DNA of 64,000 nt from Chlorokybus atmophyticus (GCA_009103225.1 RHPI01003533.1:124001-188000), one strand, 5' to 3'; numbered from the stretch's first letter, positions 48,292 through 53,101 are shown. The notes: generated by a model not told the origin, from the sequence alone. Made by a program: numbers and translations.

Positions 48292-51200
48292 TCAAGCCAC
48301 GCAGCGCGGGACAGCGCTGATGGTGGCGATGAGAGGATCGTGGTCGGAAGAGCGGAACTTGTCGGGGCGGTAGATGCGGTTCTCGGTGGCCAGGTAGTGC
48401 AACAGGTTTGGCTCGTCTGAGTTAATGTGCACATACGTGACGTTGAACACCTGCGTCATGCATACATGTTTAGCTGCAAGTTAGCAATAGCTTGTAAATA
48501 TGGTAATTGCTGGTTGATGTGTTTGGGGCACATAAATAAGTTGTCAGCGTACCTGCGGGACCATGCTGGGAGTGGCGAAGATGTGATCCAGAGCACCAGC
48601 CTCGCCCTGGAACACGAATGAGTAGCGTGTGTCGCTGGGAAGGGTAGAAGTGACATCGAACAAGCCACCATTGCTGCAAAGTAAGAATGTAAGTAGTCTG
48701 TGTGTGTACAATTGTGTGGCAACCACAATGCTCAATATCCCAGCCACCACAATGCGTGCTTGCTCACCGCAGAGTGTTGAGGGGATCCTCAAATGAGTAT
48801 GCGTTCATGTCGCCCATCACAAGCACGTTCTTCACGCCATTGCGAGCAACATTCTGCTTCACAAAGTCCAGCACGGCCTGCGCAAGACATCAACAAGCAA
48901 AGTAAGCTATCTCAAGTGCACGTGCCCTGTTCTTCTCGTACACGAGTACACTTGCACGAGCATGTCTATCTCTGCATGTGCTTTGAGTATCTCACCTGGG
49001 CCTGGCCAGTGCGCTTGGCATTCCAGCAGCTCTGTCCATCATTCTGATCAGCATCAAGGCCAGAGGCGACCCCGCACGACTTGGACTTCCAGTGGTTGGC
49101 GATGACGGTGAACTTGAGCGGGGGGGTTGATGACTTGGTTTGGAAGGACTGCAATAGAGGTGATATTGTTGGTTTGATGCGTGCGCACAAGTGTTGTGCA
49201 CCAAAACATGTACAAATACCTGGGCAACCGGCCTGCGGCCGACAGAATCGTGAATGGACGCAGTGTCCGCCACAACAATGCCGATGCGGCTCACGGTGCG
49301 CGTGTTGTAAATGATGCTCTCCTTGATCTGGTCTGTTGCACATCAGGTGACCACATGTCATCAACAGCATTAGAGATTATGACCATGATTGCATTATGAC
49401 TGCATGTACCGGTGAAGCAAGGGGTGCCGGGGCACACCGGGTCCGGAACGATAGCAAACTTGTCATGGCTACCAGTCTTATTCAGAGCCAGGTTCAAGCG
49501 CTGGACCTGCACGGGACATCACAAGACATCATTGCAGTGGAGTGGACACTGAGCAGGTGAGGTGAGGTGGACTGCAGCCGTTGTGGCAGTATCAAACGGC
49601 AAGTTGGCCTGTCAGGCGCATGTGTTGTGCATGTGCAGATGATGGGTTTGACGGTATGACAAGAGAGTGTACATTGGTATGCCTGATCCACACGCCCATG
49701 AAAGAGAGAGAGAGAGAGAGAGAGAGAGAGAGAGAGAGAGAGAGAGAGAGAGAGAGAGAGAGAGAGAGAGAGAGAGAGAGAGAGAGAGAGNGAGAGAGAG
49801 AGAGAGAGAGAGAGAGAGAGAGAGAGAGAGAGAGAGAGAGAGAGAGAGAGAGAGAGAGAGAGAGAGAGAGAGAGAGAGAGAGAGAGAGAGAGAGAGAGAG
49901 AGAGAGAGAGAGAGAGAGAGAGAGAGAGAGAGAGAGAGAGAGAGAGAGAGAGAGAGAGAGAGAGAGAGAGAGAGAGAGAGAGAGAGAGAGAGAGAGAGAG
50001 AGTTCAACATACCAAGAACGCAGTGGAGTTAGCAACATTCTCCACCTCCTCCAGAGTGAGCACATCAGCGCTGAGAGAGATGAGAGCGGCAACTATCTTC
50101 ACGGTTTGCAGCTCAACCTCTGTACAGGTGAAACACATGAGGCACCAACTCGTAGTTGCGTAATTCAGTGCAGACAAACGTATACACACACGGACCTTGG
50201 GCGTTGGAGGCACCACGGCCAGCGGGATAGTATGTGTTGGTGAAGTAGTTCTCCAAGTTGAAGGTACCCACCTTGATGGTATACTTCCTGAACAACCCAC
50301 CCGCATGTTGGCACACATCCACACACATCCACACAACACACACAACCACCCTTGACTCACTGGTCAGGGAGAGGGCCGGGGCGACGGTTGACGCTAGTGA
50401 AGTCAATGTCGCCAAGAGGCTGGATTCGGTAGACACCAAAGTCGTAGTCCAGGACGCCCACAAGGCCCTGGACGGAGTCGCCGAGACGGACGGTGGGGCT
50501 CGATGTCCCATCAAGGTAGTTGCTGGCTTGGGATCCTGGGAACGTGGTGTCGTTGTAGCGGATGCTCACGCCGTCGTCCAGAAGAATCCTCAGCTCCTGG
50601 TTGGCAGCCTCCTGCGTCTGGAACTGGCTCAAAGGATACTGCGAGAGAGGAAGAGAGCCAGGTGAGGTACATGTGTTGAGTTGGTAAGTCAGCAAGCTGT
50701 AGTCATATGTGCGTAAGTGCGTGTCAGCAACTGTCTGACTCAACATCTGGTTGGTGCAATAGCCGTAACAGTTGCTGCCTGAGTATACATGCTTGTGTGC
50801 TTGTGTATATATGTGCGCACGTGTGCACACACACATGCATGGGCGTACTTGCATGACGGGGGTAAATGCGCGTGCACACGCACATCTATGTCCATGCGGG
50901 CATGCATATGTGCCTACATGTATAAAGGCAAGCACCCCACAAACTTAGCTTGGGATGATGTACCCTATTCACTCATTCACACACTAACCTTCTCAGTGGG
51001 GCTAAACTGGCGGCCACCGGCAGCGAGAGTGATCTCGCCAAAGGCACCGAGGTTGTAGGTTTCAGTCACAAAGTGGCTGCCAGGGAAGTTCACAAGCATG
51101 CCTTCGTAGCGCTCGTATGTGACACCTGTTGCAGCCAACCAGGTGGTGTTAAAACATGGAGTTGTTGTCTCTGCATGCACATGACCACTTGGATTCAAAA

Positions 51201-53101
51201 CTCACCAGCCGGGAGAGGCAAAGTAATGCTGACGGGAGTAGGGAGCGGGTTGTTGGATGAGCACACGGTGACCCTTGTTGCACTGATTTCAGTCTTTGTG
51301 CTGAACTCGTCCACCTACGTGGGGGTGTGCGGGTTTGCGTTCGTGTGTGAATATCATTGTGAATGTATTTCTGCAATGCGCCCACATTTGCATGTCCGTC
51401 TGAGTCTGAGGCACGCGTGGGTGCATGTGTGTGTAAGCGTGTGCGCCTGTGTGCGCACACATACACAGAAACATGTCCCCCGGATGAGGTAGCTCATGCA
51501 CAAGTACATGCTTGCCCTCACCTTGCCAGAAACAGCAACAATGTCACCGACCGACACAGCGGTGGTGTTGCTGGGGTAGTACACAAACACGCCATCGGAG
51601 GTGGCAGGGTTGTTGTCTCCGCCATTCGCTTCTTGAATGTAGAAGCCGCTCAGCTGAGTGGGGTTCTGATAGTCTCCAACAACAACGCCGCGCGCAACCA
51701 CAGTGCTCCCAACAAATGGGCTCGAGTCTCCACTGCCCTGAATGGCGTAAATCGGCGTAGCGCTCCCATCGCAGTCGCTAGCTGTTGTTGAAGCACAGTC
51801 AGTGTTGGGTACACAAACCCACTGTGCACAAGTACACGACACTTAGTCTCCTTACGTGGTGGTGGGCTTGGTGATGGTGGTGGCGGGCTGGGCGACGGCT
51901 CCACGGGTGACTCTGTAGGTGTTGCTGGCACAGGCTCTGGTGGGGGCGAAGAGGTATTTTCCGGAGCAGGTGGTGGCGGGGAGCTATCAGCAGCCGGAGT
52001 CGGCGGAGGTGAGCTTGTTGGTGGTGGTGGGCTTGGTGCAGGTGAACCACCGCAGCTGAATGTTTGATCGCTGTTGACGGTACCTGCAGCGACGCGTCAG
52101 GTTGTTGAAGTGTGGGTTTGTTGAATAGAAATACCGTTGCTTTGTGTTGGAGCAGTGCGACCTCACCTGCGGTGGCAGAGCCAATGACCCAGCTGAAGTC
52201 TTCATATGAGCAGCCGCTGCCAGTCAACTGCAATCGAGACACGCAGATGAGACACAGCGTGTGTGCTACATGTCAAAACAAGGTGTGCAAGGAGCCAACC
52301 AACCTGCAGAGAGGTACCAGTGGCCGTCCCGTCCTCGGAGACTGAGGAAGGCAGCGGGGTAGCGACCATGCCCGCAGCAGGTCCTGCCGTCGTGCCAGTC
52401 GACGCAGCTGAAGAGGAAACAAGCGTGTCAAACAGACTTAAAGATGGCGAGCGCAAGCGCCCAAACACACCCAAGCATCGATGCATGCACCGGCGCAGTC
52501 ACGTGCCCGCACGTGTACGCCGGCACGTGTACGCACATACACACATGACCACACACCTGTGCACGAGCCCTCGTAGCTGATGAACTGCACCACAGTGCTG
52601 CCTTGCACAAGAGCGATGGCGTCGGGGGACCCGTTCTGGATGCCGTTGACTGGGTACGCGACGGAGATGAAGCCATAGCCCGCACCCGCATCCGTGAAAG
52701 TGCCCGACAAGGTGTACGTGGGTGTGTAGACAACTGCCGCACTTGGCACATTGCAGTTGTACAAGTAAATGGTGTAATCCGCAGCGTTGGTCCCGGCAGG
52801 CGCTGCAATCTCAATGAACTCGTTCGCATCGGTGCCAAGATTGTCATAGTGGAACTCGTTGATGAACACCTTGGTCTGTGCAAGCGCCACTACACAAGGC
52901 CAATGGTCAATGCAACGTTTCAGCCTCACCTTACAACGGGATGGCAGCATTCCTCACGCTGGCAGACTTTATCAACAACAAATGTGCGTGCACGCACAGA
53001 AACGCACATGTACTTGTGCAAATAGATATGCACGCATGCGTGCACACACCTGGTGCCACAATCAGCAGCGCAAGCACGGCAACGGCGAATGCGCGCGCCA
53101 T
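48292..53101 (-). CDS. Secreted ExeM/NucH-family endonuclease (signal peptide, LTD-like domain, Ser-Pro linker, OB fold, EEP nuclease); about 17 exons, apparently intact
   Basis: MARAFAVAVLALLIVAP|VALAQTKVFINEFHYDNLGTDANEFIEIAAPAG; TPIYAIQGSGDSSP..VVARGVVVGDY..GFYIQE..D.NPATSDGVFVY; YERYEGMLV; RILLDDG; VGTFNLENYF; LEEVEN; NHWKSK; GDMNAY..EDP; YSFVFQGEAGALDH; HINSDEP; FRSSDHDP. The exon junctions I traced stay in frame. Confidence 0.9.
49703..50002. repeat. (AG)n microsatellite, about 300 bp, intronic
   Basis: Uninterrupted AG repeat apart from one N; begins about 10 nt inside the 5' end of a nuclease intron (TTCTTG|GTATGT). Confidence 0.98.

Follow-up and report, generated by a model that had tools for sequence, protein, structure and literature searches.

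The genome of the streptophyte alga Chlorokybus atmophyticus holds an intact, intron-rich gene for a protein that, judged from its sequence, belongs to the ExeM/NucH domain family of bacterial nucleases. The gene lies on the minus strand, from 53101 to 48292, of a 64,000-nucleotide stretch (GCA_009103225.1, RHPI01003533.1:124001-188000), which we call the window and number from its first letter. We consider it probable that this is a functional nuclear algal gene, of bacterial origin, for a soluble secreted nuclease of this family, and that its product breaks down extracellular nucleic acid. From the N-terminus the parts of the protein follow in the order signal peptide, LTD-like domain, extensin-like Pro/Ser spacer, YhcR-type OB region and DNase I-like EEP domain. 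Direct reading and a script agree on an intact coding sequence (CDS) of 2514 nt, comprising 837 codons and one terminal TGA, which starts with the ATG at 53101 and ends with the stop at 48294-48292. It is divided into 17 coding exons, and the script check found all 16 coding introns (71-506 nt) to be bounded by GT..AG and their phases to be consistent. An in-frame TGA stands 21 nt upstream of the ATG and thus fixes the N-terminus. The initial annotation had placed an intact nuclease gene of about 17 exons at 48292-53101, and both its coordinates and its exon count proved exact. Coordinates of all parts are collected in Table 1.

The family membership of the core can be read exon by exon. Nine exons match the NCBIfam model NF033681 (ExeM_NucH_DNase) collinearly, at model positions 2-61, 87-141, 146-227, 235-268, 272-299, 375-421, 423-456, 460-495 and 496-544, with 57, 41.9, 39.9, 14.9, 26.4, 42.8, 28.8, 29.4 and 40.7 bits; the exons were scored singly rather than joined, and their sum of about 322 bits is to be set against a cut-off of 300 bits for a whole protein. 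Residues 257-837 align as a single block to 92 bacterial representatives at 35-43% identity (local BLAST), and from residue 23 onwards, LTD-like domain included, the whole protein aligns to the Leptolyngbya protein P0209 at 40% identity over 892 columns (488 bits). For column-wise comparison we used an alignment of 22 bacterial cores with the algal exon translations (A2), in which all exons are placed in order; it replaced an alignment to one bacterial protein (A1) that misplaced most of the short exons. Exons 2-4 share 42-53% identity with the LTD regions of the bacterial ExeM/NucH proteins P0026, P0137 and P0126. The Pfam LTD model gives 16 bits in the alga (E 0.015) and 22-27 bits in these three proteins against a threshold of 34.3, and because it falls below the cut-off in the alga and in its bacterial relatives alike, LTD-like is the safe wording. 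The collinear model match, the OB-EEP block and the LTD identities together uphold the earlier assignment of the LTD-OB-EEP architecture to the bacterial ExeM/NucH family. By its profile scores and C-terminus the algal protein is nevertheless not an ExeM equivalog, since it has no GlyGly-CTERM anchor and its scores against NF033680, the model for ExeM proper (exonuc_ExeM-GG), are negligible (best exons 50.6, 17.2, 16.9 and 12.8 bits versus a cut-off of 1300).

The catalytic machinery is preserved in detail. The alga keeps 102 of the 117 columns (87%) that are near-invariant among the bacteria of A2, meaning identical in at least 20 of the 22. Included are N..NYF, E.EN, NH.KSK, GD.N.Y..EDP, LD, HIN.DEP and RSDHDP, which is to say every EEP active-site motif; in the algal protein they are found as FNLEN at residue 530, LEEVEN at 574, NHWKSK at 675, GDMNAY at 730, LDH at 773, HINSDEP at 793 and SDHDP at 820. 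With these seven motifs located and the near-invariant columns so largely kept, the earlier statement that all hallmark motifs are present stands. A profile built from A2 matches the OB plus EEP protein of PDB entries 9sf8/9sf9 with E 6e-44 over profile positions 7-518. It also reaches DNase I (E 7e-6), whose Glu39, His134 and GDFNA align with the algal LEEVEN, NHWKSK and GDMNAY respectively.

At the N-terminus the only hydrophobic stretch of the protein covers residues 1-21 and ends in ALA, the sole hydrophobic 19-mer lying in exon 1 and an AxA preceding residue 22. The protein ends 13 residues past the SDHDP motif with no hydrophobic segment there, and inspection of the C-terminus found no GlyGly-CTERM or hydrophobic anchor and no visible retention or sorting signal. 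From these features we infer that the nuclease is soluble and secreted; the initial annotation had called it secreted, of which the N-terminal signal peptide and the anchorless C-terminus are seen, secretion itself being a prediction from them. The mature protein would be acidic, with a computed mass of about 86 kDa, a pI (isoelectric point) of 4.5 and 7 NxS/T sites. Between the LTD-like domain and the OB region, exon 5 encodes a spacer of 77 residues with 33 prolines and six SPPP(P) motifs, a place that in bacterial relatives is taken by a Big_5 domain or by other sequence. Repeats of the SPPP(P) type are the signature of extensins and hydroxyproline-rich glycoproteins of green plants, and by its sequence the spacer is probably hydroxylated and O-glycosylated.

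The gene is probably transcribed, and spliced over its 5' two-thirds. The evidence comes from a public run, X1, which a tool guesses to be RNA and which derives from a strain 99% identical to the window. One X1 contig of 1816 nt runs over exons 1-11 and is free of the ten introns between them, each cut out at precisely the junctions predicted (CT..AC as read on the plus strand). At its 5' end 33 loose letters fall on 53435-53464, revealing an upstream exon in the 5' untranslated region (UTR) and the removal of a UTR intron. Compared with the window the contig is free of indels and has 15 base differences listed, of which 7 are synonymous and 8 non-synonymous, giving a rough ratio of non-synonymous to synonymous change (dN/dS) of about 0.4. 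It breaks off at the border between exon 11 and intron 11; the (CT)n/(GA)n microsatellite of this intron spans window positions 49703-50000. The 5' non-coding exon region also contains an ATG-started open reading frame (ORF) at 53438-53645 on the minus strand (MMLSLTLAP...), which, if transcribed and spliced to exon 1, would terminate with a TAG 10 nt ahead of the main ATG and would be a possible upstream ORF. In a second public run, X2, pieces are 100% identical to the window, intron sequence included, so that X2 represents DNA of the same strain. Two further runs hold more distant material: short contigs of X6, from the same study as X1, are just 90-95% identical to exons 7 and 10, and pieces of X6 and X5 map to 50234-50291, 51205-51292 and 50429-50594, one contig running on into more diverged, recognisably homologous sequence. 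By their sequence these pieces represent a diverged homologue, orthologous or paralogous, from a related strain or species.

The gene sits in a eukaryotic genome and has resided there for a long time. Long residence, as opposed to contamination, follows from the 16 coding introns and the UTR intron, the eukaryotic signal peptide, the extensin-like spacer, the loss of bacterial C-terminal modules and the eukaryotic neighbours, and also from the lack of a close sister in trees and a diverged local duplicate that carries intron sequence. The neighbours in the window are an RCC1-repeat plus BTB gene at 25100-28500 (plus strand), an enoyl-CoA hydratase exon at 32950-33420 (plus) and an STI1/HOP DP-domain exon at 40260-40660 (minus). 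The duplicate lies about 4 kb upstream of the nuclease gene, is without the first LTD strands and contains one stop and one frameshift; it is probably a pseudogene by these features. Because this copy includes intron sequence, the duplication postdates intron gain. In composition the nuclease gene is not clearly foreign, GC being 0.58 for its CDS, 0.49 for its introns and 0.52 for the window. The initial annotation had described the gene as naturalised in the alga, which agrees with its 17 introns counted with that of the UTR, the splicing in X1, the signal peptide and the spacer. A weak match to a DDE_1 transposase was also seen in the window, at 12909-13448 on the minus strand.

Every relative that could be named is bacterial. 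An exhaustive HMMER search with exon 6 of 1.84 billion representatives, a library that draws on annotated genomes, returned 3544 matches; the best 150 listed are all at most 61% identical, and over the whole gene the listed relatives are about 40% identical. Among 30 relatives looked up from this and later matches, each named one is bacterial (Fibrivirga, Pyrinomonadaceae, Ornithinimicrobium, Anaerolineales, Hyalangium and others). A search with the A2 profile listed 120 more best matches, of which all named ones are again bacterial and many are cyanobacteria; this search ranks by fit to the bacterial consensus, so that lower-scoring eukaryotic members would not surface. Five gene neighbourhoods of relatives are all plainly bacterial. 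Over the core, identity to bacterial members is 35-45%, with a maximum of about 45% (P0241, a Hyalangium relative). Scans with exon 6 found no relative in viral contigs, and none above 57% identity on a comparable stretch in 185,579 prokaryote species genomes and JGI metagenomes. A word-indexed search with the exon-6 ORF gave one match, a frameshifted bacterial gene, and exon 9 found weak matches only, to unnamed bacterial clusters, in the ESM Atlas. Since no close sister stands among the best matches, where a shared acquisition should have appeared, a narrow distribution is argued for, if not proven. Among the papers searched we found no report of an algal or other eukaryotic ExeM/NucH nuclease, and the Chlorokybus/Mesostigma genome paper is silent on nucleases and on gene transfer.

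One short exon-6 match was set aside. An isolated ExeM-type OB segment (P0053; positions 210-473 of locus L002, GCA_024449935.1, JAANSS012303777.1) is 56% identical to bacterial P0126 and lies on a contig of 1.4 kb with 43% GC. It is flanked by AG and GTAAT in the manner of an exon and ends within two codons of the algal exon 6 boundary. It was the sole exon-like relative among the short exon-6 matches screened; the same contig has a phage-like ORF, and we regard the segment as uninformative.

Maximum-likelihood trees of the OB-EEP core, unrooted and of 92 and 56 rows, both put the alga within bacterial diversity, where its branch is long (1.26-1.45 changes per site) and no sister is strongly supported. 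In the 56-row tree the alga falls outside a cyanobacterial clade of 100% support. Forcing it into a clade with the cyanobacteria costs 9 log-likelihood units, which the approximately unbiased (AU) test does not reject (p-AU 0.146). With no sister supported and this constraint not rejected, the trees point to no particular donor. An old horizontal transfer from a bacterium is the most likely reading of these sequence comparisons, its direction and age being what we infer from them. As for the ancient bacteria-to-alga transfer proposed in the initial annotation, the bacterial side of the claim is favoured by named and context-checked relatives that are all bacterial and not above about 45% identity; the trees do place the alga inside bacterial diversity, but support no sister, single out no donor and do not reject a cyanobacterial one.

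Table 1. Parts of the Chlorokybus nuclease gene and its nearby partial copy, in window coordinates.
Feature	Position	Strand	Basis
Exon 0 (non-coding 5' exon), 3' end	53438..53464	-	X1 contig 5' letters map with 1 mismatch; GT donor at 53437-53436
5' UTR intron, 314 nt, GT..AG	53124..53437	-	X1 contig
Exon 1: 22 nt 5' UTR, ATG and most of signal peptide (residues 1-18)	53050..53123	-	Junction to exon 2 in X1
Exon 2: signal peptide end and main part of LTD-like domain	52557..52889	-	42-53% identity to bacterial LTD regions; spliced in X1
Exon 3: LTD-like domain, continued	52304..52407	-	Sequence reading and X1
Exon 4: LTD-like domain end (LTGSGCSYEDFSW)	52167..52227	-	Sequence reading, X1, alignment
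Exon 5: Pro/Ser-rich extensin-like spacer	51856..52083	-	Spliced in X1 through 74-nt intron
Exon 6: first OB-fold (YhcR-like) of ExeM/NucH core	51522..51781	-	NF033681 positions 2-61, E 1.6e-15
Exon 7: OB region, continued	51206..51314	-	Alignment A2; spliced in X1
Exon 8: core, ERYEGMLV motif	50989..51125	-	NF033681 positions 87-141, E 6e-11
Exon 9: second beta region between OB fold and EEP domain	50361..50638	-	NF033681 positions 146-227; spliced in X1
Exon 10: EEP domain start (FNLENYF)	50196..50287	-	NF033681 match; A2
Exon 11: EEP domain; LEEVEN Glu aligns with DNase I Glu39	50013..50119	-	Profile comparison
Intron 11, 506 nt, with (CT)n microsatellite of ~290 nt and single N at 49791	49507..50012	-	Sequence reading
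Exon 12: EEP domain	49410..49506	-	Sequence reading and A2
Exon 13: EEP domain (RRPVAQ)	49220..49332	-	Sequence reading and A2
Exon 14: EEP domain; NHWKSK His aligns with DNase I His134	48996..49148	-	NF033681 positions 375-421, E 3e-11
Exon 15: EEP domain (GDMNAYSFEDP)	48768..48877	-	NF033681 positions 423-456
Exon 16: EEP domain (YSFVFQGEAGALDH)	48553..48673	-	NF033681 positions 460-495
Exon 17: EEP domain (HINSDEP, SDHDP) and TGA stop; no C-terminal anchor	48292..48450	-	NF033681 positions 496-544, E 1.4e-10
Decayed inverted partial duplicate of exons 2-5 with introns (probable LTD pseudogene fragment)	57225..58036	+	62% DNA identity, 857 columns, to 52800-52018

The way the protein might work can be pictured from its parts and from what is established for ExeM. 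In ExeM cleavage depends on the OB region as well as on the EEP domain, the LTD being dispensable and enhancing it, and this endonuclease is sugar-unspecific, cuts RNA and DNA and requires Ca2+ plus Mg2+ or Mn2+ (PMC6085458). By analogy, a cleavable N-terminal signal peptide would send the algal protein into the secretory pathway, the LTD-like beta-sandwich would enhance cleavage without being indispensable, and a stiff Pro-rich stalk of 77 residues would keep the nuclease core away from it. The YhcR-type OB region would hold the nucleic acid and the DNase I-like EEP domain would cut phosphodiester bonds with the help of divalent metals. Exported as a soluble glycoprotein, the enzyme would probably degrade extracellular DNA or RNA in the wall, the mucilage or the surrounding biofilm, and it may plausibly serve to scavenge phosphorus or nitrogen, to remodel the matrix or to protect against foreign DNA. 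Both the activity and the physiological role are thus proposed on the strength of analogy. As to its history, the gene most likely came from a bacterium into the algal lineage with its LTD, OB and EEP parts already joined in one unit. The sorting and repeat modules of the bacterial C-terminus would then have been lost, and the eukaryotic signal peptide, the Pro-rich spacer, the 16 coding introns and the UTR intron gained, with a partial duplication nearby.

Several points weigh against this account of a functional, transferred and assimilated gene and should be considered together. GC at third codon positions is 0.68 in the nuclease CDS versus 0.54 in four neighbouring host exon pieces, which leaves compositional assimilation in doubt. 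Distant eukaryotic homologues could lie beyond the best 120-150 matches listed. In the trees the alga has a long branch and no sister with strong support, and a cyanobacterial placement is tolerated by the AU test. The dN/dS of about 0.4 between X1 and the window is only mild evidence of constraint. That X1 is RNA is a guess, and the removal of coding introns 11-16 is predicted from sequence and homology.

Other origins of the gene can be considered. It would be unlikely, in our estimation, that instead of a transfer specific to this lineage the gene has a far older source, either the cyanobacterial ancestor of the plastid (by endosymbiotic gene transfer) or an early eukaryote, with loss almost everywhere else. 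The cyanobacteria do have a claim: they supply the best match over the full length (Leptolyngbya P0209, 488 bits), LTD-EEP members are numerous among them, and joining the alga to their clade costs just those 9 log-likelihood units. The free tree, however, leaves the alga outside that fully supported clade, no close sister of the alga appears among the best 150 matches listed from the library of annotated genomes, and such a descent needs very many independent losses. That all detectable relatives are bacterial might also suggest bacterial contamination or an assembly artefact. Against this stand the GT-AG coding introns and the UTR intron, with eleven of these introns spliced out in the X1 contig, which is independent and belongs to another strain, the identical DNA of X2, introns included, the extensin-like spacer, and the eukaryotic RCC1-BTB, enoyl-CoA hydratase and STI1-domain neighbours. 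The splicing in X1 and the identical DNA in X2 refute contamination for practical purposes, and we dropped it, its probability being negligible.

Whether the product still acts as an extracellular nuclease can be questioned on other grounds. The fold might have been kept for another substrate, such as RNA, cyclic or sugar nucleotides or a wall or matrix phosphodiester, or the protein might act in endomembranes or the vacuole rather than on extracellular DNA. The EEP superfamily includes phosphatases and sphingomyelinases, and ExeM, besides cutting RNA as well as DNA, was found membrane-associated and not in the medium (PMC6085458). A change of substrate fits poorly with the nucleic-acid-binding OB region, the 87% of near-invariant columns kept and the closest PDB and profile matches, which are nucleases; an endomembrane or vacuolar site would sit poorly with a C-terminus that displays no retention or sorting signal, and we judge this whole alternative improbable. 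Still harder to credit is a transcribed gene in decay and without function. The nearby partial copy has clearly decayed and the ratio of non-synonymous to synonymous change relative to X1 is not low, yet in two strains the 17 exons hold an intact ORF without indels, and 102 of the 117 near-invariant columns and all catalytic motifs persist although the branch exceeds one change per site. The intact ORF and the retained motifs led us to drop the pseudogene reading of the main gene, which we hold to be very improbable. A functional algal gene for a secreted nuclease of bacterial origin is, in our view, the better account.

More tentatively, a larger proposal can be made, one that we would put forward as possible and rather doubtful. 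It is that among eukaryotes this lineage is the first, and may be the only one, to have a secreted nuclease of the ExeM/NucH type, that an early-branching streptophyte alga took up the gene from bacteria of soil or fresh water, within a broader intake of their secreted hydrolases, and that the extensin-type stalk is a refit for the wall or mucilage. If this were true, a phototroph near the base of the lineage of land plants would have a bacterial way of mining extracellular DNA for phosphorus. Should the restricted distribution and the activity hold, a well-defined and easily assayed enzyme would join the bacterial genes acquired by streptophyte algae, and extracellular DNA would be indicated as a nutrient of an alga living in soil or as a component of its matrix; land plants use unrelated nuclease families for this job. 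The gene would also illustrate how a bacterial protein may be refitted for eukaryotic secretion, by a new signal peptide, the loss of bacterial anchors, an added extensin-like stalk and the gain of many introns. Neither the enzyme family nor bacteria-to-alga transfer as a general theme is new, and the advance is an incremental one, a clear but not revolutionary case of transfer.

The closest known systems are ExeM of Shewanella oneidensis MR-1 and its relatives NucH (Aeromonas) and Xds (Vibrio), which have the same order of signal sequence, LTD, YhcR-like OB region and C-terminal EEP domain, and with which the alga shares conserved metal- and phosphate-binding motifs. At 837 residues the algal protein is similar in length to ExeM (871). 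It differs from ExeM in its eukaryotic host and 17 coding exons, in having an extensin-like spacer between the LTD and the OB region, and in being without the C-terminal Pro-rich linker and the GlyGly-CTERM/hydrophobic anchor; its identity to any bacterial member is 35-45%. The best overall matches are cyanobacterial, Chloroflexota and Myxococcota members (P0209 of Leptolyngbya sp. FACHB-261, P0055 of Hyalangium sp., and L007, from a Chloroflexia metagenome-assembled genome). Members of this type carry C-terminal RTX, PKD, Calx-beta or Big_5 modules, whereas the alga has none of these. The nearest solved structure for the algal core is PDB 9sf8/9sf9, an 'Endonuclease/exonuclease/phosphatase domain-containing protein' of 562 residues, which is without an LTD and is likened to the alga by profile only. 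DNase I (PDB 4awn, 1dnk) shares the EEP catalytic fold, with remote sequence similarity, but has neither OB region nor LTD. The land plants offer the comparison of function: the nucleases they secrete under phosphate starvation or during senescence are S1/P1-type endonucleases, RNase T2 and the staphylococcal-nuclease-like CAN enzymes, proposed to recycle nucleic acids from outside the cell and from dead cells. The job proposed for the algal nuclease, which would be a separate answer derived from bacteria, is the same, whereas the folds and families are unrelated.

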